Assembly (NCBI RefSeq): GCF_052425735.1
Contig: NC_135761.1
Location: forward strand, 20,336,001 to 20,400,000
Reading direction: 5' to 3'
Length of the DNA stretch: 64,000 bases
Source of the DNA: Oculina patagonica
Taxonomy: Eukaryota
Shown here piece after piece: positions 3,698 through 49,700 of the stretch (position 1 is its first letter; every line of letters starts with the position of its first letter). The notes beneath the pieces were generated by a model. It ran no database searches, was not told the DNA's origin, and worked only from the letters and a program-made list of their open reading frames with translations. The position numbers were made by a program, and so were the translations under genes.

Positions 3698-6600
3698 TTA
3701 TGCTATGCCATAGCACTTTAGCTTTCCCAGTGTGTGATAACCTTCCTCGCCACTTGATACATCCCCAAACCTGAGCTGTTTAACTGGAAGATGTGTCTTG
3801 TCAGTGAGGAGACCGCTGTCCTCACGCCATACAGCGTCATTCTTATCACAGTTACAACCATACCTGGAGTCTGCACATGAGTTGTTCATCCCGCATGCGC
3901 ACTTACCACTACCAGGTGATGCTCCGCCCCAGTACGTCATCTTACTAGAGTCACGTGACACCCACCAGGCTGATCCGACTCTGAGCATCATTGAACTATA
4001 ACACTCGTACTTGATAAACTGCTCACAGTGTAAGGATACCCTGGTGAGACTCGCCAACTGAGGCAGACTCGCTCCAGTATAATGAATGTCACGCGAATAA
4101 CAACCGTGATCTTCACATCCGTCTACGTGCGTCCTGCTTTCACTGTCGTGATTTATTACTGTCACGCCAACTCCATTCTTGTCACTCATGTCACAATAAA
4201 CTGTAAATGGTGCCAGGCCTCCCGAGCCATCTGGACCAATGACGTAATTTCCGCTTACACTGCTGGCGTGTTTTCTTATCCCAGAACACGAAGTCGCAAT
4301 AACTGGGGAATTGATTTTGACCTTGGCTTCTATTATTGACAAAGCATTAGTCGCTCTACAGGTGTAAGATCCTTCGTGTGATTTCTTGATGTTCTGAATC
4401 AGCAGTGTTTCATTCTGTAGAACATTGGACTCTACAGGAAGTAGAGACTTACCATCCTTTGTCCAAGTGATTGTAGTTCTCAGGTCACTCTCGGCCACAC
4501 ACGGCAGATGGAGACTTAAACCAATCACAGGAGTCACCTCTTGAGGAGGACGGACTTTAAAACGCAAAGGAGGGAATACCGTTAGTTGAGCAGTGTCAGT
4601 TGCCGATCCCAGAATATTCTCTGCTTTACAAATGTATGTTCCACCGTCCTTTCTTGTCACACTGTTAATAGTCAACGTTCCATTCACCACTTTATTTCTG
4701 TCTTCAGGCAAACTACCTACTGACTTAGCCCACGCGACACTGGGAGGCGGCTGACCATAACCACTGCAGGCGATGGTAACGTTTTGTTTTTCTTCAGCAA
4801 TCAGCCGATTGGATGATAATAAAAGTTTAGGAGCGACTGTTGAAAAAAAGGAATTATTTTCCTTTGGCAAAACATACTACGTTTACAATTTACTGAATAA
4901 ATTTTAACCAACACCTACTTTATTGTAAAGTTCACTCCAGAATGGCCATTTATTTTCTTCACGCCAATAAAAAGTTAATACAAAGATATGTTATTCACAA
5001 AAATTTCAGCCTCCAACGTACGCTTTAACCCTACGAAATCTTTCCCAGAACTCAACAACTGAACACCGCCATCTTGGAGCTGGTAATGTATGCTTGACGT
5101 CAAAGAGCTCAGCATGAAGTTTGGCGGGAAAATTAAAATACTCGAAACTCCTTGTTTCTTCGTCTTTTGTTTCTCAAAATTCCTGTTTTGCAGCTCCATT
5201 CTGCTCAAACAGCTCCAAGAGCTACAAAAAACAAGGAGTTCTGACTATTAAATCTTTCCGCCAAAATTCAGGCTTAGCTCTTTGACGTCACGCATACAAT
5301 ACCAGCTTCAAGATGGCGGGGTTCAGTTATCGAGTTTTAGGAAAGATTTCGTAGGGTTATAGCAAACGTTAGAGGCTGACATTTTGGTGAATAACATGTC
5401 TTTGTGTAAACTTTTTATTGGCGTGAAGAAAATAAATGGCCATTTTGGAGTGAATCGAACTTCTCCTTTAACGTTGTTTCACATGTATATTTTGTTTAAT
5501 TACGTATACCTATTTATAACCTAGTCAAATTGTAGGCTACTTTCAGCACGTTTATTTCAATTTAAATGTCATGGGATAAATGCGGCCCGATATGAAAGGA
5601 ATTGGCATATTTCGCACCAACTCATAACAAAACCTTCCAGTGACCAAAAACCCTATCTTTACAGCGGACTTTTAGTAACACTGATCTAAATTATATAACT
5701 TACACTGGACAGTTAATTTCGCCGAGGCATTCACTTGTCCCAGCAAATTTTCCACTCTGCAGCTGTAAACTCCGTCGTCTCCAGGTCTAACGTCCTTCAC
5801 AATCAGTGCGCCACTGGACTCTACCACGTGACGTCCAACCGGCAGCGATGAATTCAGCTTAGACCACGTGACTTTTGGACTTGGATTACCATCCGCTGTA
5901 CATTTCAAGATGGCTGTCTGACTTTCATTGACTGTCGTTCCAACAGGACGCTGCAGCAGAGATGGAGCCGAGATGGACTGGCCCGGTTCACCTTTGACGC
6001 CTTTCATACCCGGTGGGCCTCTAGGTCCCACGGGACCGGGGTCTCCTGGTACTCCGATATCCCCCTTTATACCCATCGGTCCTTGAGCTCCTATTGGTCC
6101 ATGTTTACCGGGAGGTCCGTTTGATCCGGGTCTCCCTGGGGGACCTGACTTCCCTCGGGTTCCCAGTTTTCCTCGTCGTCCCGTGTTACCTTTTGGTCCC
6201 GTGCGACAGAGCGTGTGATCTTTAGCACAGACTTGGTTTTGCAGCAGACCAAATTCTTGTTTGACCAGTGCTTGTACTTCAGAGGCGGTAAGGGTTGATT
6301 TCTTTTGTGGATCATCCGTCGAAGAGCGTTTCTGTCTTGAGATGGTCGCCTGTTTACCTGTAAAATTATAGTTATTTGTTTATTAACGTACACTCTTTCA
6401 ACCATTCTTTGACGTTCAGCGGTTGGTATGATGCGACGTATTTCCGCTTTGATTTGTCAATGTGACTAACTGACTTAGATCCCAGCTCTCCTCTGGGAGA
6501 ATGCGGCCTCCGGAGGGGGGGGGGGGGTCGCATAACAAAGGGACGGGGATGCTCGTCGGAAATTTTGAAATGAACCTCTAAAAGAGACCAATCTGGTGTG

Positions 6601-7923
6601 GCTCAAGCTTTTCCTGACCCCTAAAAGATACAAAAAAAACTAAGAATAGAATTTATATTTGTATATTTCTTCCTGTGCACCTCTAAACGAGACCATTATG
6701 GCTAAAAATATTGGCGTTTTGCCTGGAACACCCTAAGCGAGGTCAACATCCGAAATTTACACCCCTAAGCGTGTACACTCATATGCGAGTCTCCCCCCCC
6801 CCCCCCGGGATAGGTCCATATCATTGAAATCTTTTGAAATTGTAACTATTCGTGTTAGAAAAACCACTTTCTTTATTTTTTTATTTTTTATTGCAATTAC
6901 AAAAAAGAAAATTAATTACACAGTAAAGTTACATACATTTTAGGAATAGGAAAAAAAAAAATAATAATGAAAAAAAATAAAATAAAGTTAATTAATAAAT
7001 GTGATAATTACACTTCACTATTACAATTCTCAAGTTATTACACGCACAAAGATAGCCTTAAGGATAGTAACATTTGAAATAATAACAATACATATTTATT
7101 ATATAGGTTTAATTATCCATTTTTTATTAAAATATTCTTTTTTGTGATTTTACTTTCTATTTCATACTTAATTTTAATTTTGGCTTTAAACCCCGCAATT
7201 TTAGGAAGGGTTTGACTTCTTCTGCAGTCCCATAAGAACAATTTTCCAATAATTATGAAGTAATTTAATAGATCAAGTAAAGGGCATTTTTCCGTAAATA
7301 TTCCAAATAAAACATATTTTAGGGGGAGGTGGATTTTCTGTTTTGATAGTAGGTGCCAGTATGATGCAAAATCTGTCCAGAATTGTCTAGTGTGGGAACA
7401 GTTATAAAAGAAATGATTTGAGGTTTCTGACTCAGTTGTACAAAACGTACACAAATCATCGCTTTTGTAACCAATTTTAAGTAATGTAGTATTCGTATAA
7501 AAAAAAAAGTTTATAACTTTATATTGGAAAGCTTTAACATAAGATTCAAGTGCAGGAACAACATGTTTCTGCTTGGACAAAAGGCGCGCCAGAATAACTG
7601 ACAAATTACACAAGAACCTATGCTCTTAAAAAAATCTCAGTAACGTAACTGAACATACCTTTGGAGGCTTGCCAATGGCGTCCTGTAGCCATAACGTGCC
7701 ATCTTTCGTATTGTTGTTGTACTTTTAGCAGGAGTTTTGTTTCCATCTTATCACAGAATGTTACTGAGTGCGATATCAGTCGATGATGTTCTTGTATTCT
7801 GAGTTCCACGTGAATTAGCGAGATACAACACACAACAGACAACAGTAAGCCTGACGCGGAACACAAGCGGTGCCGTGTTTGTCTTCTGTTCGTCTGCTTC
7901 TTTTCTTTATCTTGGTGTCTCAT
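3698..7923 (-). CDS. Copy 1: type II TM-furin-collagen-3xIg-Caspr-type fibrinogen-like protein (CniFL-like), 685 aa; exons 7659-7923, 5704-6357, 3698-4836
   Basis: Exon 1 runs from the ATG through a basic tail and hydrophobic [20 protein letters not shown] to the donor AAG|GTATG. Exon 2 (654 nt, CAG acceptor, T|GTAAGT donor) encodes RQKR, 25 GXY triplets and an Ig domain. Exon 3 encodes 2 Ig domains plus [23 protein letters not shown]. Both introns are phase 1 and the joined frame is open. Confidence 0.9.
4927..5470. mobile_element. Palindromic MITE (long inverted arms) in intron 2 of copy 1
   Basis: ttcactccagaatggccatttattttcttcacgccaataaaaagtt (from 4931) mirrors aactttttattggcgtgaagaaaataaatggccattttggagtgaa (to 5454), and the arms extend about 250 bp. 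Absent from intron 2 of the other copies. Confidence 0.8.
6510..6810. mobile_element. ~300-bp MITE-like insert with poly-G/poly-C ends in intron 1 of copy 1 (paralogous insert at 54065-54372 in copy 8)
   Basis: gggggtcgcata...tatgcgagtctccccc ends. The same insert sits at the same position in copy 8 and is absent in copy 3 intron 1. Confidence 0.65.
6868..7559 (-). mobile_element. 5'-truncated non-LTR retrotransposon (L1/Tx1-like ORF2 C-terminal zinc-finger fragment with A-rich tail) in intron 1 of copy 1
   Basis: ORF 7113-7613 contains CTFC..ETSNHFFYNC..FW, typical of the zf-RVT region after LINE RT. There is an A-rich 3' end near 6870, and the flanks join up in copy 8 intron 1. Confidence 0.75.
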
Positions 7924-8159
7924 CGTCGCAACTGTCACTGCAATCTTGCGATGTCAAATTGATTTAAACGGCGTTTTGTTCACTCTTGAGTTGCTTACAG
8001 ATAAGTCCACTGTAGGGTTAATCGATCAGTGAAAGGACGATGTCAAATTGATGGTCCGATTTTCATTGAGACTCGCAAATGTAACACGAATCCAAATGTT
8101 AACCGATGCGGTGTAAAAATAGAAGCATTTGTCTGTGTTCGTTATGACGATTCAGTATC

Positions 8160-10736: not shown

Positions 10737-13332
10737 TTATGCTATGCCAAAACACTTTAGTTTTCCCAGAGTATGGTAACCTTGCTCGCTACTACCCCCT
10801 GTATCTCCAAACCTGAGCTGTTTAACTGGAAGATGTGTCTTGTCAGTCAAGAGACCGCTGTCTTCACGCCATACATAGTTATTTGCATCACAGTTACAAC
10901 CTCGACTGGAGACTGCACATGAGTTGGTCATCCCGCATGCGCACTTACCACTGCCAGGTGATGCTCCGCCCCAGTACGTCATCTTAGTAGAATCACGTGA
11001 CACCCACCAGGCATCACTCCCTATCACTGAACCATAACACTCGTACTTGATAAACTGTTCACAGTGTGTGGAGACTCTGGTGAGACTCGCTAGCTGGGAC
11101 AGGCTTGCTCCTGTATAATGAATGTTACGTGAGTAACAACCTTGAGGTTCACATCCGTCCACGTGCGTTCTGCTCTCACTGTCGTGACTTATCACTGTCA
11201 CGCCAACTCCATTCTTGTCACTCATGTCACAGTAAACTAAAAATGGTGCCAGGCCTCCTGCGCCATCCGGATCAATGAGGTAATTTCCGCTTACAGTGCT
11301 GACGTGTTTTCTGGTTACAGAACACGATGTTGCAATAACTGGGGAATTGATTTTGACCTTGGCTTCTATTATTGACAAAGCATTAGTCGCTCTACAGGTG
11401 TAAGATCCTTCGTGTGATTTCTTCACGTTGTGAATTAAAAGTGTTCCATTCGGTAGAAAACTTGAGTCAGCAGAAAGTGAAGACTGTCCATCTTTCTTCC
11501 ATGTGATTGTAGTTCTCAGGTCACTCTCGGCCACACACGATAGATAAACCGTTGCAAACATACTGGGAGTCACCTCTTTAGGAGGACGGACTTTAAAACG
11601 TAGAGGAGGAAATACCGTCAGTTGAGCAGTGTCTGTTACTGATCCAAGAATATTCTCCGCTTTACAAATGTATAGTCCACCGTCCTTTCTTGTCACACTG
11701 TAGATTGTCAGCGTTCCATTCAACATTTCTGTTCTGACTTCAGGTAAACTGTCAACTGCTCTGGACCACGTGATACCGGGAAGCGGCTGGCCAGTAGCAG
11801 TGCAGGCGATGGTAACGTCTTGTTTTTCTTCAGCAATCAATCGATTAGAAGATAATAAAAGTGTAGGAGCGACTGTTGAGAAACAAGGAAATTTTATTCT
11901 TTGGGAAACATATGGCGAATGCACTGAACTAAATAAGGTTTCATTCTATATACTCTTCCGACAAGAAAATTATCTTTCTGAAAAACGACTGAATTGATAT
12001 TTTGGATTAATAAAGTGCTTGAGTAACGGTTTTCATTTTGCCCTCAACTGGCCTTAACCCCAAAACGCCATCTTAACAAAGGGCCTGTTTTTCAGGATCA
12101 ACCACAACTACTCGGCACTAAATATCTTAATTATACAACTTACACTGGACAGTTAATTTCGCCGAGGCGTTCACTTGTCCCAGCAAATTTTCAGCTTTGC
12201 ACCTGTAAACTCCTTCGTCTCCACGTCTAACGTTTTTGACAATCAGAGCGCCACTGGACTCTACCACGTGACGACCTACAGGAAGCGATGAACTGAGCTT
12301 AGCCCACGTGACCTTTGGACTTGGATTTCCATCCGCTGTACATTTCAAGATGGTTGTCTGACTTTCATTGACTGTCGTTTCAACAGGACTCTGCAGCAGG
12401 GATGGAGCCGAGATGGACTGGCCTGGCTCCCCCTTGTTACCTTTCATACCCGGTGGACCTCTAGGTCCTACCGTACCTGGGTCGCCCGGCACTCCGACAT
12501 CCCCCTTTATGCCCATCGGCCCTTGAACTCCTATTGGTCCATGTTTACCGGGAGGTCCGTTTGTCCCGGGTCTTCCTGGGGGACCTGGCTTCCCTCGGGT
12601 TCCCGCTCTTCTGCGTCGTCCCGTGTTACCTTTTGGTCCTGTGCGGCAGAGCGTCTGATCTTTAGCACAGACTTGGTCTTGCAACAGTCCAAATTCTTGT
12701 TTGATCAGTACTTGTACTTCAGAAGCTGTTAGGGTTGATTTCTGTTGTGAATCATCCGTCGAAGAGCGTTTCTGTCTTGAGATTGTCTCTTGTTCACCTT
12801 TGAAATTAAAGTTATTTGTTTAACATCGTACACTGTGAACCATTCTTTGACATTCAGCGGTTGGTATGATGCAACATATTCAGCCTATTTCCGCTTTTAT
12901 TTGTCAATGTAAATTACTGACTTAAATCATAGCTCTGCTCTGTGAGAATAGGGCATAACAATGTACTCTTTTTAATTATTGTATCTATTCGTGTTAGGTA
13001 AACCATTCCAATAAAAACATGTTCCTCTGTGAAAATCTTGAAAATCTCAGTAACGTAACTATTAACATACCTTTGGAGGCTTGCCAATGGCGGCCTGAAG
13101 TCAAAACATGCCGTCTTTCGTAATTTTGTTGTACTTTTCGAAGGATTTCTGTCTCCATCCTATCACAGAATGTTACTGAGTGTGATATCAGTCGATAATG
13201 TTCTTGTATTCTGAGTTCCACGTGAATTAGCGCGATACAACACACAACAGACAACAGCAAGCCTGACGCGGAACACAAGCGGTGCAGTGTTTGTTTTCTC
13301 TTCGTCTGATTCTTTTCTTTGTTTTGTTTCAT
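10737..13332 (-). CDS. Copy 2 of the CniFL-like gene, 683 aa; exons 13071-13332, 12144-12797, 10737-11872
   Basis: Same splice sites and phases as copy 1, open frame. One collagen Gly is replaced by Arg (GRR-RRA-GTR). Confidence 0.9.
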
Positions 13333-16385: not shown

Positions 16386-19144
16386 CTATGCTATGCCATA
16401 GCACTTTAGTTTTCCCAGCGTGTGGTAACCTTGCTCGTCATTTTCACCTATATCTCCAAACCTGAGCTGTTTAACTGGAAGATGTGTCTTGTCAGTGAGG
16501 AGACCGCTGTCTTCACGCCATACATCGTCATTGTTATCACAGTTACAATTACGACCATTTACACATGAGTTGGTCATCCCGCATGTGCACTTACCACTTC
16601 CAGGTGATGCTCCGCCCCAGTATTTCATCTTAGTAGAGTCACGTGACACCCACCAGGCATGGTCAGGTTCGTACCTGAATATCGCTGATGCATAGCACTC
16701 GTACTTGATAAACTGTTCACAGTGTGAGGAGACTCTGGTAAGACTCGTTAGCTGGGACAAGCTTGTTCCTGTGTAATGAATATCACGTGAATAACAACCA
16801 GAATCTTCGCATCCATGCACGTGCATTCTGCTCTCACTGTCGTGACTTATCACTGTCACGCCAACTCCGTTCTTGTCACTCATATCACAGTAAACTGTAA
16901 ATGGTGCCAGGCCTCCTTCGCCATCCGGATCAATGACGTAATTTCCACTTACAGTGCTGACGTGTTTTCTGATCACAGAACACGAAGGCGCAACCACTTT
17001 GACTTTGACTTTGGCTTCTATTGTTGACAGAGCATTGGTTGCTTTGCAGGTGTAAGATCCTTCAAGTGATTTCTTGATGTTATGAATCAGCAGTGTTTGA
17101 TTTTGTAGAACATTGGACTCTACAGGAAGTGAAGACTTACCATCCTTTGTCCAAGTGATTGTAGTTCTCAGGTCACTCTCGGCCACACATGGTAGGTGAA
17201 CACTTAGTCCAATCAAAGGAGTCACCTCTTGAGGAGGACGGACTTTGAACCGCAGAGGTGGAAATACCACGACTAGAGCAGTGTCTATTGCTGATCCAAG
17301 AATATTCTCCGCTTTACAAATATATAGTCCACCGTCCTTTCTTGTCACACTGTTGATTGTCAGAGTTCCATTCACCACATCAGTTCTGTCCTTAGGCAAA
17401 CTACCCCCTGCTCTAGACCACGTGATGCTGGGAAGCGGCTGACCAGTAGCACTGCAGGCAATGCGGACGTTCTGTTTCTCCTCAGCAATCAATCGGTTGG
17501 ATGACAATAATAGTTTGGGAGCGACTATCGAGAAAAAAAGGAGAAATATATATTTTCATGGGGTGAAACAATGGCGAATGCACCTTACTGGATGAATTTT
17601 TATGCAATATTTTCTTTATATACAATTTATAGATCTTTTTATGCTTGTTAAATTATAGCCGGTCATGTGCAGGTTCTTTCAGATTTAAATTTTATGGGAT
17701 GAAGCAACACCTGATAAGAAAAGTTTTTCTCTTAAATACGACTTCATAGTTTGGATGAAAGTACTTCTGAAGTTGCGTTATCTTTTCATATTTCGCATCG
17801 GCTAAAACAACGACTTTTTACCCCAAAAGACCTATCTTTACACTGCAAAGGGCTTCTTTTCCAGCATCATCCACAAGTATTTGCCACTAAATATCTAAAT
17901 TATATGAAAACTTACACTGGACAGTTAATTTTGCCGAGGCGATCACTTGTCCCAGTAAATTTTCAGCTTTGCAGCTGTAAACTCCTTCGTCTCCAGGTCT
18001 AACGTCCTTCACAATCAGAGCGTCACTGGACTCTACCACGTGACGACCAACAGTAAGCGTTGAATTGCGCTTCGACCACGTGACTTTTGGAGTTGGGTAA
18101 CCATCCGCTGTACACTTCAAGATGGCCGTCTGACTTTCATTGACTGTCATTCCAACAGGACGCTGCAGCAGAGAAGGAGCCGAGATGGACTGTCCTGGCT
18201 CCCCCTTGTTACCTTTCATACTCGTCGGGCCTCTAGGTCCCACGGGACCTGGATCGCCAGGAACTCCTATATCCCCCTTTATGCCCATGGGTCCTTGAAC
18301 ACCTATTGGTCCATGTTTTCCTGGAGATCCGTTTGTCCCGTGTCTCCCTGGGGGGCCTGGCTTCCCTCGGGTTCCCGGTCTTCCTCGTCGTCCCGTGTTG
18401 CCTTTTGGTCCTGTACGGCAGAGCGTGTAATCTTTAGCACAGACTTGGTATTGCAGCAGCCCGAGTTCTTGTTTGATCAGTACTTGTACATCAGAGGCGG
18501 TAAGGGTTGATTTTTGTTGTGAATCATCGGACGAAGAGCGTTTCTGTCTTGAGATGGTCTCCTGTTCACCTTTGAAATTAAAGTTATTTTTTAACATCGT
18601 ACACTGTGAACCATTCTTTGACATTCAGCGGTTGGTATGAAGCAACCTATTTCCGCTTTGATTTGTCACTGTGTGCCTAACTGACTTAGATACTAGCTAG
18701 CTCTCCTCTGGGAGAATAGCGCCATATCAATGTTCTCTTTTAAAATTGTAACTATTCGTGTTAGAAAAACCATTCCACAAAAAGCATGTTCCTTCGTGGA
18801 CAGTAGGCGCACCAGAACAACTGACAAATTACACAAGAACCTATGCTCCTGAAAATCTAAGTAACGTAACTTAACACACCTTTGGCCGCTTGCCAATGGC
18901 GGCCTGTAGTCATAGCATTCCATCTTTCGTAATTTTGTTGTACTTTTCGCAGGAGTTTTGTCTCCATCTTATCACAGAATATTACTGAGTGTGATATCAG
19001 TCGATGATGTTCTTGTATTCTGAGTTCCACGTGAATTAGCGCGACACAACACACAACAGACAACAGCAAACCCGACGCGGAACACAAGCGGTGCAGTGTT
19101 TGCTTTCTGTTCATCTGCTTCTTTTCTTTATCTTGGTGTTTCAT
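16386..19144 (-). CDS. Copy 3 of the CniFL-like gene, 685 aa; exons 18880-19144, 17916-18569, 16386-17524
   Basis: Conserved splice sites and open frame. Collagen Gly to Ser (GPT-SMK). Confidence 0.9.
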
Positions 19145-19814: not shown

Positions 19815-22719
19815 CTCCCATATAAACCTTTTGACAGTATTATTAAAGGGTCTCAAAGCGCAAGCGTGGTTGTGGAACGAAAAATCCGATGTCTCCATGT
19901 ACGAAAAAAAATTTCGAACAGGATTCCCTCTAATTCGTCGGTTTAAAAGAGTGAATAGAATATGTATGCACGTCCGTCGAAACAGTATGCTTGGAAGTGG
20001 ATTCGAACCCATTTTCCGTCGCACACTTAGATTCCTTGTGATTTTAGATCAAGCACGTATTCTGATCCACTTAAAGTAAAAACAGCTAGGGTCTATGTGT
20101 TCTCCTCACGTAAATAAATTTTCAGCGTGCTCATACGTCTTACCAGTGCCACACAAGAAATTAAAACGGTACAAGCCAATATAAAGGGTAAAATACATTG
20201 TGTAGCGTACAAGCGTCTTTGGTCAGTATAACAGCTTCATTAAATATACTTGGTAAAACACCAAAATGCAGGATTGTGATCGTATAAAATGTGTTCGTGG
20301 CGGCCATGTTGGAGAAGTGAAACAATAAAAGATATTTGTATAAAATGATTTTTTCCCAAAGGAAAATCAATCTATTGTTTCACTCCTCCAATATGGCCGT
20401 CATGAACGTACTCTACACACCAGTTTTTTCGAAGGTGTCACTTCACATTGCAATTATTTTTTACTTCATAGGCACTTAAACAAGGTAACTCCATCAGCTT
20501 TACAATTAAAACTATTATCGATAGATGCCCTGATAAAAAATAAAGAAATAAAATAATAAAAATAATGATAAAAATGAGACGTTTCGTAAGTGAGTCTCAT
20601 TGTAGTGAGGTTGCCATGACAGATCGTGTCCGTTGATGTATTTTGTTTAGCTCACCAATCCACCCAACCATGCGCCAAAGAGTACAAAAGCGTACTTCAC
20701 ATAACACCGTACTGCTATTAAATTAAACTGAAACTGTACAAGAAAAAGCGCCCAATATGTATTTTAGTTCTTTATTTCAAAATGCTTATTTTTTGCGATT
20801 ACATAATCTCGAAAAATGACTTTAATTTCGTGTTTTTGTAGAAAAATTATGCTAAAGGGAAGTAAGTACACGAAAAGTTTCCAACTAATTGCTGATCGAT
20901 ATAAAAAAGATAGTTTCAGAATCGGCGCTACAGATTCCAGTTTTACAAAGCAATTTTTATCCAAGCGATATTGAGCAAAACGATAACAAGACAAAACTAA
21001 AACAGGTTGGCATGTTCGTTTCCAACAAATCATGAAGTCGTACTAACGAGGTTAACGTTTATTAAGATATGTCTTTCCTCTGCTTCATGATATAACAATA
21101 ACTGAGGTACACTGTGATTGTTTACGAAGTTGTTATAAATTGCACATTTTTTTACTATGTGGCACAGAGTTTCTACCTTTTTTCGCTCTAATTATTAGGC
21201 ACAATTATTATCCTCGCTTGCTTCCATGCTTTTATGAACTATTTTTATTATTATCTTGCTTTCCTTATCATTATCTTCAGGTAATTGCAAAGTCACATTT
21301 ACATTTCAAACAAAACTGATTGTGATCATTGCAAATACTAAGTTTGGTGGTGATGTCAGTTCTTTTGAGAGTATCAAAAGGATACTCGAATTTTTATGCT
21401 ATGCCATGGCATTTAAGTTTTCCCAGGGTATGATAACCTTGCTCGCCGCTATCGCCTATATCGCCAAACCTGAGCTGTTTAACTGGAAGATGTGTCTTGT
21501 CATTGAGGAGACCGCTGTCTTCACGCCATACCTTGTCATTCTTATCACAGTTGCAACCATACCTGGAGTCTGCACATGAGTTGGTCATCCCGCATGCGCA
21601 CTTACCACTGCCAGGTGATGCTCCGCCCCAGTAATTCATCTTAGTAGAATCACGTGAGAACCACCAGGCGTGCCCATACAAGACAATCGTTGAAGCATGA
21701 CACTCGTACTTGATAAACTGTTCACAATGCGAGGAGACTCTTGTGAGACTCGCCAGCTGAGACAGACTCGATCCAGTGTAGTGTATGTCACGCCAGTAAC
21801 AACCATCAGGGTTACATCCCCGCACGTGTGTTCTGCTCTCACTGTCATGACTTATTACTGTCACGCCAACTCCATTCTTGTCACTCATGTCACAGTAAAC
21901 TGAAAATGGTGCCAGGCCTCCCGAGCCATCTGGATCAATGACGTAATTTTGGCTTTCACTGGTGGCGTATTTTCTGATCACAGAACAAGAAGTCGCAACA
22001 ACCGGGGAATTGATTTTGACTTTGATCCCTCGTGTGATTTCTTGATGTTCTGAATAAGCACCGTTCCATTCTGTAGAACTTTGGACTCTACAGGAAGTGA
22101 AGTCTTGCCATCCTTTGACCAAATTACTGTGGGTCTCAGGTCGCTCTCGGCCACACACGGTAAGCGAATTGCATGTCCAATCACAGGAGTCACCTCTTGA
22201 GGAGGACGGACTTTAAAATGCAGACGAGAAAATATTACCAGTTGAGCAGTGTCTGTTACTGATCCCAGAATATTCTCAGCTTTACAAATGTATAGTCCAC
22301 CATCCTTTCTTGTCACACTGTAGATTGTCAGCGTTCCATTCATCACTTCTGATCTGTCTTCATTTTTACCCCCCGCTCTGGACCACGTGATCCTGGGAAG
22401 CGGCTGACCAGCAGCCGTGCAGCTGATTGTAAAGTTTTGTTTTTCTTCGGCAATCAATCGATTGGATGATAATAGAAGTGTAGGAGCGACTGTCGAGGAA
22501 CAAAAAAAAGAATTTTATTCTTTGGGAAAACATATGGCGAATGTACTTTACAGAACAAGAACATTGAGAAGCTTGAGAAGCTTAAAATCGGGCGCTTTGC
22601 CTTGAAAGGCAGGGTTCAGTACAGCAGAAACCACGAAGCAGTTACTTAAGTAGCACTCAGTCCGACTGTGTTTGTGTAAGTCACAGGGCTTGCATGAGCT
22701 GTATTAGTGTGCATAATAT

Positions 22720-23036
22720 AATTTATACCATGCCATAGAAAATACAGCCAATCAGAATACAGGAAAGCCGTTGTATATCCGACGGTATTCAACCCAACCT
22801 TCCCATCGTGCGCTGCAATCTTATTCTCGATGAAATTTAGTGAGCGTATTTTCTATGGCATGGTATAAAATAGTTACACAACACTTTCTCGTGGTATACT
22901 ATGGAATATCCCACTTGTCACTTGTATTTTCTTCGTATACACACTCGCCTAAAGGCTCGTGTGTATACCGAGAAAATACAAGTGACTCGTGGGATATTCC
23001 ATAGTATACCACTCGAAAGCGTTGCATAACTAGTAT
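22720..23036. mobile_element. Double-hairpin non-autonomous repeat (cagccaatcaga-containing type)
   Basis: ttataccatgccatagaaaatac / gtattttctatggcatggtataa, plus a second long hairpin at about 22890-23012. Confidence 0.55.
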
Positions 23037-28940: not shown

Positions 28941-29040
28941 GAAGGACAAATCTAAGACACTGGACTACCCCCAATTCTGTAAAGTCAATTTTTCGTTATT
29001 ATTGAGAAATGTTTGCAAATTTCTTTTCAAGAGGGGGTTA

Positions 29041-36775: not shown

Positions 36776-39480
36776 TTATGCTTTGCCATAGCACTTAAGT
36801 TTTCCCAGCGTATGGTAACCTTGCTCGTAATCGGATATATCTCCAAACCTGAGCTGTTTAACTGGAAGATGTGTCTTGTTAGTAAGGAGACCGCTGTCTT
36901 CACGCCATACCTTGTCATTTTTATCACAGTTACAACTTTGACTGGGGTTTGCACATGAGTTGGTCATGCCGCATGCGCACTTTCCACTGCCAGGTGATGC
37001 CCCGCCCCAGTAATTCATCTTAGTAGAATCACGTGACACCCACCAGGAAAATCCGCTTCTGAAAATCATTGCCTCGTAGCACTCGTACTTGATAAACTGT
37101 TCACAGTGTGAGGAGACTCTGGTAAGACTCGCTAGCTGGGACAGACTCGCTCCTGTATAATGAATGTCACGTGAATAACAACCAGAAACTTCGCATCCAT
37201 GCACGTGTGTTCTGCTTTCACTGTCGTGACTTATCACCGTCACGCCAACTCCATTCTTGTCACTCATGTCACAGTAAACTGTAAATGGTGCCAGGCCTCC
37301 TGTGCGATCCGGATCAATGACGTAATTTCCGCTTACACTGGTGACGTATTTTCTTATCACAGAACAAGAAGTCGCTACTGGGGAATTGATTTTGACTTTG
37401 GCTTCTATTGTTGACAGAGCATTAGTCGCTTTACAGGTGTAAGATCCTTCGTGTGATTTCTTGATGTTCTGAATCAGCAGTGTTCCGTTCTGTAGAACAC
37501 TGGACTCTACAGGAAGTGAAGACTTGCCATCCTTTTTCCAAGTTATTGAAGCTCTCGGGTCACTCTCGACGACACACAACAGATGAAGACTTAAGCCAAT
37601 CACAGGAGTTACCTCTTGAGGAGGACGGACTTTGAAACGCAGAGGCAAAAATATCATGACTACAGCAGCGTTAGTTGCTGATCCCAGAATATTCTTTGCT
37701 TTACAAATGTATAGTCCAGCGTCCTTTCTTGTCACACTGTTGATTGTCAGGGTTCCATTCACCACATCAGTTCTGTCCTTAGGCAAACTACCTACTGCTC
37801 TGGACCACGTGATACTAGGAAGCGGCTGACCAGTAGCACTGCAGGCGATGCGGACGTTTCGTTCCTCCTCAGCAATCAATCGGTTGGATGACAATGATAG
37901 TTTAGGAGCAACTATCGAAAAAAGAGAAAAATATATTAGGGGTCAAACAATGGCGAATGCAATGTACCATATGAATTTTTTTCCACTTTTTCCTTAATAT
38001 TCAAATTAATAGATCTTTTTACGCTGGTTAAATTATAGCCTGTCATGTGCAGGTTCGTTCCGATTTAAAATTTCATGGGATGAAGCAACCCCTGATGAGA
38101 AAAGTTTCTCTCTTAAATACGACTTCATAGTTTGGATGAAAGTGCTTCTGAAGTTGCGTTATCTTTTCATATTTCGCATCAGCTAAAACAACGACTTTTT
38201 ACCCCAAAAGACCTATCTTTACACTGCAAAGGGCTTCTTTTCCAGCATCATCCACAACTTCTCGCCAATAAATATCTAAATTATGTGAAAACTTACACTG
38301 GACAGTTAATTTCGCCGAGGCGTTCACTTGTCCCAGCAAATTTTCAGCTTTGCAGCTGTAATCTCCTTCGTCTCCAGGTCTAACGTCCTTCACAATCAGA
38401 GCACCACTGGACTCTACCACGTGACGACCTACAGGTAGCCGTGAATTGTCCCTTGACCAAGTAACTTTTGGTGTTGGATTACCATCCGTTGTACATTTTA
38501 AGATGACTGTCTGACTTTCATTGACTGTCATTCCAAATGGGCGCTGCAGCAGAGATGGAGCCGAGATGGACTGGCCCGGCTCCCCCTTGTTACCTTTCAT
38601 ACCCGTCGGGCCTCTAGGTCCCACGGGACCGGGATCGCCAGGCACTCCGACATCCCCCTTTATGCCCATCGTTCCTTGAGCTCCTATTGGCCCATGTTTA
38701 CCGGGAGGTCCGTTTGACCCAGGTCTCCCTGGGGTGCCTGGTCTTCCTCGGGTTCCCGGTTTTCCTCGTCGTCCCGCGTTACCTTTTGGTCCTGTGCGGC
38801 AGAGCGTGTGATCTTTAGCGCAGACTTGGTTTTGCAACAGACCAAGTTCTTGTTTTATCAGTACTTGTACTTCAGAGGCGGTAAGGGTTGATTTATGTTG
38901 TGAATCATCGGGCGAAGAGCGTTTCTGTCTTGAGATGGTCTCCTGTTCACCTGTAAAATTAAAGTTATTTGTTTTACATCGTACACTGTGAACCATTCTT
39001 TGACATTCTGCAGTTGGTATGAAGCAACATATTTACTTCCGTTTTATTTGTTAATGTGAATTACTGATTTTAATCATAGCTCTTCTCTGGGAGAAAAAGG
39101 GCATATCCTTGTACTCTTTTTAGTTATTGTATCTATTTGTGTTAGGTAAACCATTCCAATAAAAACATGTTCCTGTGTGGAAATCTTGAAAATCTCAGTA
39201 ACCTAACTATTAACATACCTTTGGAGGCTTGCCAATGGCGGCCTGAAGTCAAAACATGCCGTCTTTCGTAATTCTGTTGTACTTTTCGAAGGATTTCTGT
39301 CTCCATCCTATCACAGAATGTGACTGAGTGTGATATCAGTCGATGATGTTCTTGTATTCTGAGTTCCACGTGAATTAGCGCGATACAACACACAACAGAC
39401 AACAGCAAGCCTGACGCGGAAAACAAGCGCTGCAGTGTTTGTCTTCTGTTCGTCTGATTCTTTTCTTTGTTTTGTTTCAT
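36776..39480 (-). CDS. Copy 5 of the CniFL-like gene, 683 aa; exons 39219-39480, 38297-38950, 36776-37911
   Basis: Conserved splice sites, open frame, all domains present. Confidence 0.9.
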
Positions 39481-41657: not shown

Positions 41658-44364
41658 CTATGCTATGCCATAGCACTTTAGTTTTCCCAGCGTGTGGTAA
41701 CCTTGCTCGTCATTTTCACCTATATCTCCAAACCTGAGCTGTTTAACTGGAAGATGTGTCTTGTCAGAGAGGAGACCGCTGTCTTCACGCCATACATCGT
41801 CATTGTTATCACAGTTACAATTACGACCATTTACACATGAGTTGGTCATCCCGCATGCGCACTTACCACTTCCAGGTGATGCTCCGCCCCAGTATTTCAT
41901 CTTAGTAGAGTCACGTGACACCCACCAGGCATGGTCAGGTTCGTACCTGAATATCGCTGATGCATAGCACTCGTACTTGATAAACTGTTCACAGTGTGAG
42001 GAGACTCTGGTAAGACTCGTTAGCTGGGACAAACTTGTTCCTGTGTAATGAATATCACGTGAATAACAACCAGAATCTTCGCATCCATGCACGTGCATTC
42101 TGCTCTCACTGTCGTGACTTATCACTGTCACGCCAACTCCGTTCTTGTCACTCATATCACAGTAAACTGTAAATGGTGCCAAGCCTCCTTCGCCATCCGG
42201 ATCAATGACGTAATTTCCACTTACAGTGCTGACGTGTTTTCTGATCACAGAACACGAAGGCGCAACCACTTTGACTTTGACTTTGGCTTCTATTGTTGAC
42301 AGAGCATTGGTTGCTTTGCAGGTGTAAGATCCTTCAAGTGATTTCTTGATGTTATGAATCAGCAATGTTTGATTTTGTAGAACATTGGACTCTACAGGAA
42401 GTGAAGACTTACCATCCTTTGTCCAAGTGATTGTAGTTCTCAGGTCACTCTCGGCCACACATGGCAGGTGAACACTAAGTCCAATCAAAGGAGTCACCTC
42501 TTGAGGAGGACGGACTTTGAACCGCAGAGGTGGAAATACCACGACTAGAGCAGTGTCTGTTGCTAATCCAAGAATATTCTCCGCTTTACAAATATATAGT
42601 CCACCGTCCTTTCTTGTCACACTGTTGATTGTCAGAGTTCCATTCACCACATCAGTTCTGTCCTTAGGCAAACTACCCCCTGCTCTAGACCACGTGATAC
42701 TGGGAAGCGGCTGACCAGTAGCACTGCAGGCAATGCGGACGTTCTGTTTCTCCTCAGCAATCAATCGGTTGGATGACAATAATAGTTTGGGAGCGACTAT
42801 CGAGAAAAAAAGGAGAAATATATATTTTCATGGGGTGAAACAATGGCGAATGCACCTTACTGGATGAATTTTTATGCAATATTTCCTTTATATACAATTT
42901 ATAAATCTTTTTATGCTTGTTAAATTATAGCCGGTCATGTGCAGGTTCTTTCAGATTTAAATTTTATGGGATGAAGCAACACCTGATAAGAAAGATTTTT
43001 CTCTTAAATACGATTTCATAGTTTGGATGAAAGTACTTCTGAAGTTGCGTTATCTTTTCATATTTCGTATCAGCTAAAACAACGACTTTTACACCAAAAA
43101 GACCTATCTTTACACTACAAAGAGCTTCTTTTCCAGCATCATCCACAACTTCTCGCCAATAAATATCTAAATTATGTGAAAACTTACACTGGACAGTTAA
43201 TTTCGCCGAGGCGTTCACTTGTCCCAGCAAATTTTCAGCTTTGCAGCTGTAATCTCCTTCGTCTCCAGGTCTAACGTTCTTCACAATCAGAGCACCACTG
43301 GACTCTACCACGTGACGACCTACAGGTAGCCGTGAGTTGTACCTTGACCAAGTAACTTTTGGTGTTGGATTACCATCCGGTGTACATTTTAAGATGACTG
43401 TCTGGCTTTCATTGACTGTCATTCCAACTGGGCGCTGCAACAGAGATGGAGCCGAGATGGACTGTCCTGGCTCCCCCTTGTTACCTTTCATACCCGGCGG
43501 GCCTCTAGGTCCCACGGGACCTGGATCGCCAGGCACTCCGAAATCCCCCTTTATGCCCATCGGTCCTTGAGCTCCTATTGGTCCATGTTTACCGGGAGGT
43601 CCGTTTGACCCTGGTCTCCCTGGGGGACCTGGTCTCCCTCGGGTTCCCGGTTTTCCTCGTCGTCCCGTGTTACCTTTTGGTCCTGTGCGGCAGAGCGTGT
43701 GATCTTTGGCACAAACTTGGTTTTGCAACAGACCAAGTTCTTGTTTTATCAGTACTTGTACTTCAGAGGCGGTAAGGGTTGATTTATGTTGTGAATCATC
43801 GGGCGAAGAGCGTTTCTGTCTTGAGATGGTCTCCTGTTCACCTGTAAATTTTAAATAATTTGTTTTACATCGTACACTGTCTGTGAACCATTCTTTGACA
43901 TTCAGCGGTTGAAATGATGCAACCTATTTCCGCTTTTATTTGTCAATAAATGGACTAAAATCATAGCTCTTTTCTGTGAGAATAGGGCATAATACTCTTT
44001 TTAATTATTGTATCTATTCGTGTGAGGAAAACCATTCCGCTAAAAACATGTTCCTGTGTGAAAATCTTAAAAATCTCAGTAACGTAACTATTAACATACC
44101 TTTCGTCGCTTGCCAATGGCGGCCTGTAACCATAGCATGCCATCTTTTGTAATTTTGTTGTACTTTTCGAAGGATTCCGGGCTCCATCTTATCACAGAAT
44201 GTTACTGAGTGTGATATCAGTCGATGATGTTCTTGTATTCTGAGTTCCACGTGAATAAGCGCGATACAACACACAACAGACATCAGCAAACCTGACGCGG
44301 AACACAAGCGGTGCAGTGTTTGCCTTCTGTTCATCTGCTTCGTTTCTTTATCTTGGTGTTTCAT
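41658..44364 (-). CDS. Copy 6 of the CniFL-like gene, 685 aa; exons 44100-44364, 43188-43841, 41658-42796
   Basis: Conserved splice sites. The exon 3 product differs from copy 3 at only 4 residues. Confidence 0.9.
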
Positions 44365-46747: not shown

Positions 46748-49700
46748 TTATGCTATGCCATAGCATTTAAGTTTTCCCAGGGTATGGTAACCTTGCTCGC
46801 CACTATCCCCTGTATCGCCAAACCTGAGCTGTTTAACTGGAAGATGTGTCTTGTCAGTGAGCAGACCGCTGTCCTCACGCCATACACCGTCATTTGCATC
46901 ACAGTTACAAGCCGGATAACTGGGGTTTGCACATGAGTTGGTCATCCCGCATGCGCACTTACCACTGCCAGGTGATGCTCCGCCCCAGTAATTCATCTTA
47001 GTAGAATCACGTGACACCCACCAGGCATATTGTAACGTTGAATCAAAGCACTCGTACTTAATAAACTGTTCACAGTGTGAGGAGACTCCGGTGAGACTTG
47101 CCAACTGAGACAGGCTTGCTCCTGTGTAGTGAATGTCACGTGAGTAACAACCTTGAGATTCACATCCCCGCACGTGTGTTCTGCTCTCACTGTCGTGACT
47201 TATTACTGTCACGCCAACTCCACTCTTGTCATTCATGTCACAGTAAACTGAAAATGGTGCTAGGCCTCCTGCGCCATCTGGATCAATGACGCAAGTTTCG
47301 CTTACACTGGTGGTGTATTTTCTGATCACAGAACAAGAAGTCGCAATAACTGGAGAATTGATTTTGACTTTGGCTTCTATTGTTGACAGAGCATTAGTTG
47401 CTTTACAGGTGTAAGATCCCTCGTGTGATTTCTTGATGTTCTGAATAAGCACCGTTCCATTCTGTAGAACTTTGGACTCTACAGGAAGTGAAGTCTTGCC
47501 ATCCTTTGACCAAATTACTGTGGGTCTCAGGTCGCTCTCGGCCACACACGGTAAGCGAATTGCATGTCCAAACACAGGAGTCACCTCTTGAGGAGGACGG
47601 ACTTTAAAATGCAGACGAGAAAATATTACCAGTTGAGCAGTGTCTGTTACTGATCCCAGAATATTCTCTGCTTTACAAATGTATAGTCCACCATCCTTTC
47701 TTGCCACACTGTTGATTGTCAGGGTTCCATTCATCACTTCTGATCTGTCTTCATTTTTACCCCCTGCTCTGGACCACGTGATCCTGGGAAGCGGCTGACC
47801 AGCAGCAGTGCAGGCGATGGTAACGTTTTGTTTTTCTTCGGCAATCACTCGATTGGATGATAATAGAAGTGTAGGAGCGACTGTTGAGAAAAAAAAAAAT
47901 AATTTTATTCTTTGAGAAAACAGCTGGCGAATGCACTTTACTAAATAAGGTTTTATTCTAACACATGCATAGGTTATTAGGAAAGATTTTATAAATGTTA
48001 TTTTCCTTTTAAATTCTATCTCATTAATCTCATTATACTCGTTAAATTGTAGCCTATCTTGAGCAGGTTCGTTTTGATTAAAAAAAAACCCTCTTCCGAA
48101 AAGAAAAATATCTTTCTGTAAAACGACTTAATTAATATTTTGGATTATTTATCAAGTGCTTGTGCAATTTCTTTTTGCGATGTTTCGCACCAGCTCTAAC
48201 AAGACCCTCGACTGACCTTTATAGCAAAACAAAAAACATCTTAACGATACGTACGATAGGTCTGTTTTTCAGCATCAACCACAGTTACTAAATATCTCAA
48301 TTATTACACAACTTACACTGTACAGTTAATTTCGCCGAGGCGTTCACTTGTCCCAGCAAATTTTCAGCTTTGCAGCTGTAAACTCCGTCGTCTCCAGGTC
48401 TAACGTCCTTGACAATCAAAGCGCCACTGGCTTCTACCACGTGACGACCCACAGGAAGTGATGAATTGATTTTCGACCACGTGACTTTTGGAGTTGGATT
48501 ACCATCCGCTGTACATTTTAAGATGCCCGTCTGACTTTCATTGACTGTTGTTCCAACAGGACGCTGCAGCAGAGATGGAGCCGAGATGGACCTGCCCGGT
48601 TCACCCCTGTCGCCTTTTATACCCGGCGGGCCTCTAAGTCCCATGGGACCGGGCTCTCCCGCCACTCCGACATCCCCCTTTATGCCCATCGGTCCTCGAG
48701 GACCTATTGGTCCATGTTTACCGGGAGGTCCGTTTGACCCGGGTCTCCCTGGAGGACCTGGTCTCCCTCTAGGTCCCGGTCTTCCTCGTCTTCCCGTGTT
48801 ACCTTTTGGTCCTGGGCGGCAGAGCGTGTGATCTTTAGCACAGACTTGGTTTTGCAGCAGACCAAATTCGTGTTGAATCAGCAGTCGAACTTCAGAGGCC
48901 GTTAGGGTTGATTTCTTTTGTGAATCATCGGGTGAAGAGCGTTTTTGTCTTGTGATGGTCTCCTCTTTACCTGGAAATTTAAAGCGTTTATAATATGGCT
49001 GAATCCACGTGCAAGAAATATATCTTATTAACCACGCGCGAGGGCCGTACTGGGCGAATATTGGCCCGAGGTCTTGACAGTACGGATCGAGCGCAGCGAG
49101 GTCCGTACAAAAAGACCGAGGGCCAATAAACGCCCAGTACGGTCCCGAGCAAGCTTGGTTAATAAGAGATTTATTACACGACTGGAAACTTTGGGTAGTG
49201 AGAATTGCTACCCGGTAGATGTTGTGGAAAAAAAATGTGCGGCAAAACTTTTTCGCACGCTAAAAGAGTTATAATTATTTCTGTGGTTAGTTCATTTCAT
49301 TTTCAAAGCAATGAAAACTTCGAAAAACTCTTGCAAAAAAATCTAGCAAAAATCTTGTGCTAAATCGCGCGGGAATTAGCGCGGGATCATCCGGGACAAA
49401 ACCCGGTCCGATACTTGGAAAATATCGGCCCTCGCGGGACCGGAAATAAAGTAATCTGATTGGCTGATTTAGTTATTGGCCCTCGGACCGCCTTAGTCGT
49501 GTAATAAGTGCCCGTATTGCCCGTTCGGGATTTCCCGGGTCCGTCCCACCAAAAAATTTTGTTTTTTGGCCATATAATAAATCCTTTATTGACCAAGCTT
49601 GTTGGTCAAGATGGCTTTATGTTGGCCTCGTTCCTTTTTCTGCTTTTATTGACTTCGACTTCGCGTCAGACCATAAAACACAAAAAAGCATTTGGCCAAT

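Follow-up and report, generated by a model that had tools for sequence, protein, structure and literature searches.

The head domains encoded by a tandem array of collagen-immunoglobulin genes in the coral Oculina patagonica join a conserved framework to a few short hypervariable loops, and single codons in and near those loops accumulate non-synonymous change faster than synonymous change. The array lies in a 64,000-nt window of contig NC_135761.1 (positions 20,336,001-20,400,000, assembly GCF_052425735.1), where tblastn finds exon 3 in nine copies, every one on the minus strand (Table 1). We regard these coral receptors as promising candidates for a repertoire of recognition molecules encoded in the germline. 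We think it reasonably probable that they are type II collagen-Ig receptors in which a rigid, conserved head presents exposed specificity loops.

Table 1. Copies of the gene and features of copy 1, in window positions.
Feature	Position	Strand	Evidence or remarks
Exon 1 coding part, copy 1: basic cytoplasmic tail (predicted) and hydrophobic anchor	7659..7923	-	RNA contig, hydropathy
Exon 2, copy 1: neck with furin-like RQKR site, 25 Gly-X-Y triplets, Ig1	5704..6357	-	RNA contigs, spliced ORF
Exon 3, copy 1: Ig2, Ig3, C-terminal head; stop codon 3698-3700	3698..4836	-	ORF; two Pfam Ig_3/I-set matches; RNA contig
Head, copy 1: 200 residues; residue 1 = 4298-4300, residue 200 = 3701-3703	3701..4300	-	AF2 model, Foldseek
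Loop A, residues 63-65, EDH in c1, hairpin turn	4106..4114	-	entropy 2.4-3.05 bits, 73 outside sequences
Loop B, residues 101-111, 8-14 residues long family-wide	3968..4000	-	76 distinct sequences among 81
Loop C, residues 143-148, between two short Cys-rich helices; moderately variable	3857..3874	-	entropy 1.1-1.8 bits
Residue 156, Ala in c1, isolated hypervariable codon just past the CNCD motif	3833..3835	-	entropy 2.92 bits
Loop D, residues 181-186, hairpin turn, 6-18 residues long family-wide	3743..3760	-	73 distinct sequences among 81; 19 insertion columns
Copy 1 (c1), exon 3 match	3701-4870	-	tblastn
Copy 2 (c2), exon 3 match	10740-11882; head 10740..11327	-	tblastn, alignment
Copy 3 (c3), exon 3 match	16389-17537; head 16389..16985	-	tblastn
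Copy 4 (c4), exon 3 match	21397-22529; head 21397..21990	-	tblastn
Copy 5 (c5), exon 3 match	36779-37927; head 36779..37369	-	tblastn, alignment
Copy 6 (c6), exon 3 match	41661-42809; head 41661..42257	-	tblastn, alignment
Copy 7 (c7), exon 3 match	46751-47893; head 46751..47338	-	tblastn, alignment
Copy 8 (c8), exon 3 match	51238-52389; head 51238..51828	-	tblastn, alignment
Copy 9 (c9), exon 3 match	62482-63639; head 62482..63078	-	tblastn

A preliminary description of this DNA had spoken of nine exon 3 sequences. Nine copies are indeed present, but c3 and c6 are 99.3% identical, so they represent eight distinct heads. The segment 3698-4300 (minus strand) holds the stop codon and the final 200 codons of the 390-codon ORF of copy 1. 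Exon 3 is intact in seven copies, and the remaining two of the nine are pseudogenes. In c4, a 43-bp deletion and a frameshift in Ig3 and a stop in exon 1 disrupt the gene, with the frame of its head intact and its exon 2 at 33576-34229, 11 kb from its exon 3; an in-frame TAA interrupts Ig3 of c9, whose exon 2 lies past the window end. The family extends well outside this locus: the head is matched by 2,773 database proteins, and the stony corals sampled that carry the family are Oculina, Montipora, Acropora, Porites, Stylophora, Desmophyllum, and Orbicella.

The genes are spliced and transcribed. RNA contigs, which are assembled and may mix paralogues, are restricted to the exons when placed on copy 1: one links 4836 to 5704 across a GT..AG intron (minus strand), others join exon 2 to exon 1 (6354/6357 to 7656/7659), and one spans 7656-7950. 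The resulting ORF is continuous over ~685 aa, from a first Met at 7921-7923 through the TM anchor (about 7807-7863), RQKR, and the collagen triplets (about 5975-6199), which include GKHGP. We called the anchor from hydropathy, as a hydrophobic 19-residue segment after a basic stretch (Kyte-Doolittle mean 2.07), conserved in seven copies; the predicted membrane orientation is type II. RQKR, GXY triplets, and GKHGP occur in each of the eight copies that have exon 2 inside the window. Each of these stalks has 21-25 GXY triplets, and the protein is therefore probably a trimer. Pfam matches the collagen region (PF01391) in exon 2 and in P0076, and assigns one I-set/Ig_3 domain of the Ig superfamily (clan CL0011) to exon 2 and two to exon 3. 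The protein is thus predicted to begin with a basic tail of short length and the TM anchor, followed by an RQKR neck that could permit shedding, a collagen stalk, three I-set Ig domains, and a Caspr-type head.

That head has a Caspr/CNTNAP-type fibrinogen-like fold in the AF2 model (pLDDT 97.4), rather than a ficolin-type one. Foldseek aligns the model with mouse Caspr1 residues 583-782 at TM 0.92, rmsd 1.6 Å, and 40% identity, and gives similar values for CNTNAP2-5 and Neurexin-IV (TM 0.89-0.92 and 36-40% identity for the whole group). Among solved structures the best matches are procollagen C-propeptides, with a TM of about 0.6 (0.56-0.63), and solved fibrinogen domains reach about 0.3. The match to the Pfam profile Fibrinogen_C (PF00147) is confined to the 50 residues at the start of the head and scores 17.5 bits (E=0.0037) against a cut-off of 22, a hit that a permissive Pfam scan would report. 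In Pfam, c1 had no match to COLFI (PF01410) at E<=0.01, and the profile matches two short stretches only.

The preliminary description had proposed four hypervariable loops in a nearly invariant framework, and a protein alignment of the copies recovers each of the loop strings that it listed. Between copy pairs, pN is 0.052 in the framework vs 0.379 in the loops. Framework pS is 0.256, and the constancy of the framework therefore reflects purifying selection, not recent homogenisation. The same residues vary beyond the window: of the 20 residues with the highest entropy in a set of 73 independent coral sequences, 14 fall within the 26 listed loop residues (hypergeometric p=2.7e-10), and the entropies of single sites in the window copies are correlated with those of the outside set (Spearman rho 0.63). 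In 81 sequences there are 81 distinct four-loop combinations. The loops are the hottest regions but do not hold all of the variability, since residues 58, 60, 156, 26, 119, and 199 also have high entropy; residue 156 was absent from the earlier list of loops. Residues 90 and 153, also outside the loops, were flagged by one site-model run each. As to composition, aromatic and charged residues had been called common in the loops. This holds for Tyr, which is enriched together with Gly, Ser, and Ala, but not for charged residues (18% in the loops vs 20%). Loop A is closed by a covarying cysteine pair, Cys62/Cys67, in 28 of the 81 sequences; 53 have neither cysteine and none has only one. Every loop indel keeps the frame, as had been claimed, both in the window copies and in 76 intact outside heads. 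The loop flanks are invariant, and for this reason we rejected covariation analysis as a way to place the loops.

Is this variability selected? Our site models are our own implementation, not PAML or HyPhy, and hold the tree topology and the relative branch lengths constant. The comparison of M7 with M8 that had been suggested for the window copies does favor M8 (2dlnL=59, omega 4.1 for about 10% of codons). With 81 sequences, 2dlnL is 351 for M1a/M2a, 343 for M7/M8, and 258 for M8a/M8, with an omega of 2.9 for 7% of codons under M2a and of 2.4 for 8.8% under M8. The selected sites lie in loops A, B, and D, at residue 156, or next to loops; posteriors are about 1 under both models for loop B residues 102 and 104-110, and exceed 0.99 under M8 for loop D residues 182 and 184. 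A stricter, FEL-like test, which gives each site its own synonymous rate, finds beta>alpha in loop A (residue 64, p=0.0014; residue 65, p=0.006), in loop B (residue 109, p=9e-8, with raised synonymous rates at residues 105-107), and at residue 156 (alpha 0.28, beta 3.17, p=6e-5; p=1.5e-4 on a tree of the distal head only), and marginally in loop D (residue 182, p=0.04; residue 185, p=0.006). Residues 109 and 156 alone survive Bonferroni correction. The same test places 104 of 199 codons under significant purifying selection. Loop C is fast, with no excess over neutrality in the 81-sequence set: it has no beta>alpha site there and was flagged only in the M8 run on the window copies.

Taken whole, the loops look less exceptional. 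Framework dN/dS is 0.17-0.20 and that of the pooled loops about 0.9-1.3, making the loops the only part of the head in which the non-synonymous rate equals or exceeds the synonymous rate. Measured against domain-wide dS, loop dN gives a ratio of 1.33 (CI 1.12-1.55); measured against the loops' own dS, it gives 0.88 (95% CI 0.75-1.04) over 27 independent sister pairs, and a tree-based count for loops B, C, and D gives 0.8. The latter two values are compatible with near-neutral loops that contain a few selected codons. A loop-wide dN/dS above 1, as first expected, is thus not what we find, the pooled value being about 1; the excess sits at single codons in the FEL-like test. Closely related sequences do speak for selection. 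In one pair with 97% DNA identity (L010/L018), 9 of 14 differences fall in the loops and a tenth is Q156F, with loop pN about six times framework pS (Poisson p=2e-5). Altogether, diversifying selection on the candidate binding loops is partly supported: the M-series models and residues 64, 65, 109, and 156 speak for it, but the whole-loop ratio of 0.88 and the lack of an excess in loop C do not.

It is tempting to read these results as selection for recognition, but one alternative is that unconstrained surface loops simply drift, tolerate indels, and undergo gene conversion, the signal of selection being an artefact of recombination, alignment error, or variation in synonymous rates. The whole-loop ratios of about 0.8-0.9 and the behavior of loop C fit this explanation, as does a 1.5- to 1.7-fold rise in the synonymous rate in loops B and D, which hints at recombination, at misaligned indel regions, or at a local bias in mutation. 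The paralogues are also clearly mosaic, with homogenised stalks and old distal heads: pS between c8 and c9 is 0.03-0.10 in the Ig domains and proximal head vs 0.31 in the distal head, that between c4 and c7 rises from 0.07 to 0.24 in the distal head, and a tract in loop C and the codon for residue 156 recur in other sequences. Raised synonymous rates together with recombinant paralogues mean that the M-series tests are inflated. However, beta still exceeds alpha at residues 64, 65, 109, and 156 once synonymous rates are fitted site by site, and also on a tree of the distal head only. Coil structure does not account for the pattern either: all four loops are in coil segments of the model, but only 3-4 of its 14 coil segments are variable, and the other 9-10 are conserved as strongly as the strands. 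Within loop B, Tyr101, Ser103, and Ala111 are conserved, and near-identical pairs differ mostly by non-synonymous changes clustered in the loops (13 N to 1 S, compared with 18 N to 10 S outside; Fisher p=0.07). We therefore regard drift of this kind as unlikely, while giving it real weight.

A second alternative is that the loops serve self-recognition, through chain selection in the trimer or through homophilic or allotype-specific cell contact (allorecognition). The fold shared with procollagen C-propeptides (TM about 0.6) lends it some appeal, since these propeptides reportedly nucleate and sort trimers via a variable sequence; a collagen helix, a membrane anchor, and Ig domains are present in the same protein, and many similar paralogues may be co-expressed. 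However, a profile alignment to 5k31 and 4ae2 maps the chain-recognition stretch to head residues of about 69-80 and 89-91, which are conserved except for Leu90, and we down-weighted the chain-recognition homology accordingly. Type II collagenous membrane proteins, moreover, usually nucleate from the N-terminal side, which counts against chain selection by the head. We consider self-recognition improbable as the role of the loops. That the cluster is merely decaying, its copies mostly pseudogenes and its loop variation a loss of function, is scarcely credible: c4 and c9 are disrupted, but the seven intact exons, the transcribed and spliced genes, the in-frame loop indels, and purifying selection on the framework contradict it.

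The reading we prefer, of a receptor repertoire, can be put as follows. The head is a Cys-rich framework, rigid and strongly held by purifying selection, on which loops A, B, and D and residue 156, and more weakly loop C, account for nearly all amino-acid differences between paralogues. These loops may be exposed on a common face as determinants of specificity, with a putative binding function and ligand class to match. Dozens of tandem paralogues per coral genome would then form a germline repertoire of putative recognition heads. The diversity would have three sources: selection favoring point substitutions at a small number of codons, indels that keep the frame, and the exchange of short tracts among paralogues, with longer conversion tracts keeping the stalk and Ig parts alike. 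A bolder version holds that corals turned a Caspr/procollagen-type fold into an antibody-like scaffold, with dozens of sheddable trimeric membrane receptors per genome whose three or four loops, diversified by selection and cassette-like exchange, set specificity in allorecognition (histocompatibility) or in the choice of symbiont or microbe strains. That version is speculative, and we would give it little credence as it stands. Our results bear on how corals discriminate symbionts, pathogens, and other colonies at the receptor level, and they narrow the candidate determinants of specificity to residue 156 and about 15 codons spread over three loops. If the repertoire is real, this would be, to our knowledge, the first case of a Caspr-type fibrinogen-like domain used as a variable recognition scaffold.

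Known systems resemble the coral proteins in part. To Caspr/CNTNAP and Neurexin-IV they are clearly homologous, sharing the fold over the whole 200 residues and the Cys framework. In Caspr, however, the fibrinogen-like domain is single-copy, conserved, and internal to a type I adhesion protein of neurons, alongside discoidin, laminin-G, and EGF domains, while the coral protein consists of collagen, Ig, and head only, has an N-terminal anchor, and lacks those domains and the type I topology. We know of no hypervariable loops in the Caspr domain and of no ligand or binding activity for Caspr-type heads. The ‘contactin-associated proteins’ of coral skeleton proteomes were considered and set aside, as they are neurexin-like EGF/laminin-G proteins and not members of the array family. 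Procollagen C-propeptides (COLFI) also lie C-terminal to a collagen helix and use a short variable sequence for a specificity function, but the similarity is distant, and the variable loops lie elsewhere than the conserved equivalent of the chain-recognition region. The FREPs of Biomphalaria, a large diversified family implicated in parasite recognition, place IgSF domains before a fibrinogen-type head. FREPs, however, are secreted proteins without collagen whose FBG heads are canonical, and their diversity is reported to lie mainly in the IgSF part and to be partly somatic, whereas the coral variation is germline, between paralogues, and in head loops.

Closest in architecture are the cnidarian ficolin-like proteins (CniFLs), described as TM proteins in which a collagen region and, as a rule, three Ig domains precede a fibrinogen-type domain at the C-terminus, multi-copy in anthozoans and proposed to be pattern-recognition receptors of the lectin-complement pathway (van der Burg et al. 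2016, PMC5094078). They are defined by a Pfam Fibrinogen_C (PF00147) match, with a TM domain in most members; Aiptasia members are annotated as ryncolins, and citing papers also trace CniFLs to Baumgarten et al. 2015. The coral array protein has an architecture identical to this description (collagen, three Ig, TM, C-terminal head), but its head has a Caspr-type fold and a PF00147 score below the cut-off, though within reach of a permissive scan. The CniFL literature that we examined reports neither hypervariable loops nor selection analysis, and our literature search found no published description of either for cnidarian fibrinogen-type receptors. Among sea-anemone relatives of the stalk, which we checked for a canonical FBG head, the gene models of Actinostola and Nematostella are fused or partial. 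Coral tachylectin-2 is a putative immune lectin reported to be highly diverse in amino-acid sequence and under positive selection (Hayes et al. 2010, PMC2880987). It is unrelated in fold and architecture and is not a tandem collagen-Ig family.

Taking as an operational mark of a diversified receptor that codons with dN>dS concentrate in defined loops, we find such codons in the coral heads (M2a/M8 omega 2.4-2.9; FEL-like residues 64, 65, 109, and 156), in our own implementation and with recombination present. A collagen stalk with a C-terminal recognition head is likewise found in ficolins, MBL, CL-P1/COLEC12, SR-A, and MARCO, and CL-P1, SR-A, and MARCO are type II membrane proteins too. The GKHGP of the coral stalks is of the GKxGP type, the motif that binds MASPs in MBL and ficolins. 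The coral protein differs in having three Ig domains between stalk and head and another head fold; and whereas the defence collagens are few and conserved genes, the coral family comprises tens of paralogues with hypervariable loops.

The 390-codon open reading frame that ends in the copy 1 head, used as a tblastn query, finds nine exon copies in the window, all on the minus strand and 5-11 kb apart. The preliminary description had proposed four hypervariable loops (A to D; head residues 63-65, 101-111, 143-148, and 181-186) in an otherwise near-invariant C-terminal domain, and every loop string it listed was recovered from the translations and a MAFFT alignment of the copies. DNA identity between copies 3 and 6 is 99.3%, with all four loops in common. 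Copy 4 is disrupted in Ig3 by a frame-shifting deletion of 43 bp and in exon 1 by a stop, and copy 9 has an in-frame TAA within Ig3. The nine copies thus give eight different heads, and exon 3 is intact in seven of them. The likeness of copies 3 and 6, together with a copy 6 neck/collagen exon closer to that of copy 5 than to that of copy 3 (25 versus 21 triplets), suggests a recent segmental duplication with later exchange. The stretch between the copy 4 exons looks as if a large insertion had occurred there.

Mapping of full-length coral homologues gives a three-exon layout (tail and anchor; neck, collagen, and Ig1; Ig2, Ig3, and head). Assembled RNA contigs support both joints, and in two metatranscriptomes the exons are covered and unique intron sequence is not. 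Read from its first Met, the spliced copy 1 frame encodes ~685 amino acids: a basic N-terminal tail is followed by a hydrophobic anchor of 19 residues (Kyte-Doolittle mean, 2.07), a neck that carries the furin-like sequence RQKR, a collagen stretch of 25 Gly-X-Y triplets including GKHGP, three I-set Ig domains, and the C-terminal 200-residue head. Anchor, RQKR, GKHGP, and 21-25 triplets recur in every copy that has those exons inside the window. From the anchor, RQKR, and collagen features we infer a type II protein that forms trimers and is shed; since RQKR-SS is conserved between anchor and stalk, the ectodomain may be released as a soluble trimer. GKHGP has the form of the motif through which MBL and ficolins bind MASPs. 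Two intron segments of copy 1 probably derive from dispersed repeats or from pieces of transposons transcribed elsewhere, and an open reading frame in intron 1 resembles the C-terminal end of a retroelement frame. At several outside loci (L004, L007, L009, L026, L027, and others), the exon 3 match covers 1.4-1.7 kb rather than 1.13 kb, which implies an additional intron within the Ig-head exon in some coral lineages.

Window positions of the features discussed
Feature	Position	Strand	Observation
Copy 1, end of exon 3	3698-4300	-	Stop codon and final 200 codons of the 390-codon frame
Copy 1, head residues 62 and 67	4115-4117 and 4100-4102	-	Flank loop A
Copy 1, exon joints	4836-5704 and ~6357-7659	-	GT..AG, in assembled RNA contigs (public runs)
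Copy 1, intron segments	4914-5497 and 6520-6811		RNA-contig summed depth to ~3,000, many loose ends
Copy 1, GKHGP	~6090-6110	-	In collagen stalk; kept in all, with seven other copies
Copy 1, furin-type RQKR-SS	6270-6300	-	Conserved, with seven other copies
Copy 1, intron 1 frame	7113-7613	-	166 codons, Cys/His-rich pattern
Copies 3 and 6	16389-18967 and 41661-44187	-	Heads 99.3% identical, Ig parts nearly so
Copy 4, pseudogene	21397-34872	-	Exon 2 located 11 kb from exon 3
Copy 4, between exons	24-30 kb		G+C 0.45-0.48 (rich), strong GC and AT skew

To place the head, we compared its AlphaFold2 model (input alignment of 65 sequences; mean pLDDT, 97.4) with known folds. It matches the fibrinogen-like domain of Caspr1/CNTNAP2-5 and Neurexin-IV with TM-scores of 0.89-0.92 and 36-40% identity over all 200 residues, and the procollagen C-propeptides, its best solved structures, at ~0.6. 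The Pfam Fibrinogen_C match is below threshold and limited to the first 50 residues. Its TM-score to true fibrinogen domains is ~0.3. Taken together, these results argue that the head is, as modeled, a Caspr-type fibrinogen-like domain rather than a ficolin-type one. The domain family comprises 2,382 clusters at 50% identity, and 2,773 proteins in a 90%-identity database match the copy 1 head. The nearest named matches, from Oculina, Porites, and Stylophora, are mostly labeled "contactin-associated protein 1-like," and full-length relatives of 620-690 amino acids occur under assorted automatic names in Oculina, Montipora, Acropora, Porites, Stylophora, Desmophyllum, and Orbicella. The head is also repeated two to seven times in tandem in long proteins (P0001, P0002, P0065, and P0121-P0136) and follows PAN/EGF modules in further coral and octocoral proteins, and is therefore a mobile module that more than one kind of stalk carries.

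Eighty coral loci on metagenome contigs, plus two loci in an ENA assembly, yielded 76 intact heads; the final set of 81 non-redundant sequences joins the window's eight to 73 from outside. Variability in the proposed loops was confirmed and extends across stony corals: among the 73 outside sequences, entropy peaks at residues 58-65, 102-110, 144-148, 156, and 181-186, and 14 of the 20 most variable residues lie within the 26 loop residues (p = 2.7e-10). Per-site entropy in the window and outside sets is correlated (rho, 0.63). All 81 sequences have different four-loop combinations, and nearly all indels are within loops A, B, and D. In the model, each loop lies in coil between secondary-structure elements. 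Only three of the 14 coil segments are hypervariable (60-67, 102-111, and 179-185); segments 139-149 and 154-157 are intermediate, and the remaining nine are as conserved as strands. The loops had been described as rich in aromatic and charged residues; Tyr is indeed enriched, with Gly, Ser, and Ala, but charged residues are not. Cys62 and Cys67, on either side of loop A, are both present in 28 of the 81 sequences, both absent in 53, and never mixed, a pattern that indicates a putative optional disulfide stapling the loop. Heads accordingly fall into GC-xxx-GC and GY-xxx-GS subtypes, and every copy in the window belongs to the former, with both Cys.

Is this variation selected? In pairwise Nei-Gojobori counts among the window copies, dN/dS is 0.17 in the head framework (dS, 0.31), 0.36 in the Ig domains, and 1.25 in the pooled loops. 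Across 27 independent sister pairs, it is 0.20 in the framework, and in the loops 0.88 (CI, 0.75-1.04) against their own dS or 1.33 (CI, 1.12-1.55) against domain-wide dS; loop A alone gives 1.8. In a SLAC-style parsimony count, no codon outside loops A, B, and D has dN above mean dS except residues 60 and 156; the same count puts synonymous change in loops B and D at 1.5-1.7 times the average rate. Codon site models for the 81 sequences (our own implementation; F3x4, FastTree topology, single global branch scale) gave lnL values of -16417.9 (M1a), -16353.0 (M7), and -16310.3 (M8a) with no positively selected class, and of -16242.3 for M2a (omega 2.9, 7% of codons) and -16181.3 for M8 (omega 2.4, 8.8% of codons). 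Posteriors were ~1 at residues 64, 65, 102, 104-110, 156, 182, and 184. The M7 versus M8 comparison suggested earlier, confined to the window copies, likewise favored M8 (2dlnL = 59; same implementation).

The site models presuppose a single tree and a synonymous rate that does not vary along the sequence, both violated in the head data, so we ran a FEL-like grid with the synonymous (alpha) and non-synonymous (beta) rates free at each codon. Beta exceeds alpha at residues 64 (p = 0.0014) and 65 (p = 0.006) in loop A, 109 (p = 9e-8) in loop B, 182 (p = 0.04) and 185 (p = 0.006) in loop D, and 156 (p = 6e-5) outside the loops, and at no site in loop C across the 81 sequences. Purifying selection is significant at 104 of 199 codons. 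With data and tree restricted to the distal head, residues 64, 65, 109, and 156 are retained. What can be defended is an approximately neutral or faster pace of change in the loops, on a tightly constrained scaffold, and positive selection at a few loop codons is robust. Diversifying selection, as first proposed for the loops, is therefore supported at those codons but not loop-wide, where dN/dS is ~1, nor in loop C across the 81 sequences.

Recombination also contributes, as sliding-window nearest-neighbor analysis shows the paralogues to be mosaics. Between copies 8 and 9, pS is 0.03-0.10 in the Ig domains plus head residues 1-55, and 0.31 in the distal head framework; between copies 4 and 7, the values are 0.07-0.08 and 0.24. 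Either the stalk has been homogenized or the distal head swapped, with the breakpoint immediately before loop A. Two outside loci, L010 and L018, are 97% identical in DNA, and nine of their 14 differences are in loops, a tenth being Q156F. Loop B has three non-synonymous changes, each single-base; loop C has a clustered replacement with the same sequence as in another gene; and all three positions of codon 156 differ, with the codon matching other family members. This pattern indicates that point substitution and short-tract exchange are both at work, and loop diversity would arise from the two together, the exchange being between paralogues. Overall, the original interpretation is partly supported, as selection at a few loop codons of a rigid scaffold plus recombination; as a single CDR-like surface that would bind a ligand, the loops are candidates.

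The head might instead act in chain selection, as does the procollagen chain-recognition sequence, which maps to head residues ~69-80 and 89-91; this role is weakened because that region is conserved apart from Leu90. Literature searches found no paper on hypervariable loops or selection in this collagen-Ig-head family. The closest described relatives are the cnidarian ficolin-like (CniFL) proteins, defined by Pfam collagen, Ig, and Fibrinogen_C matches, mostly with a TM segment and three Ig domains, and proposed there as lectin-pathway receptors (van der Burg et al. 2016, PMC5094078). Compared by published description, the architecture is the same, but the window head is under the Fibrinogen_C threshold and has a Caspr-type fold. 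The window family may be the coral branch of CniFL or else a sister family whose head differs. Functionally, it would resemble defense collagens, collagenous scavenger receptors, and snail FREPs. We rate it as a germline-diversified innate receptor family, a kind already known, in which the residues named above are candidates, open to testing, for what sets specificity in coral recognition.
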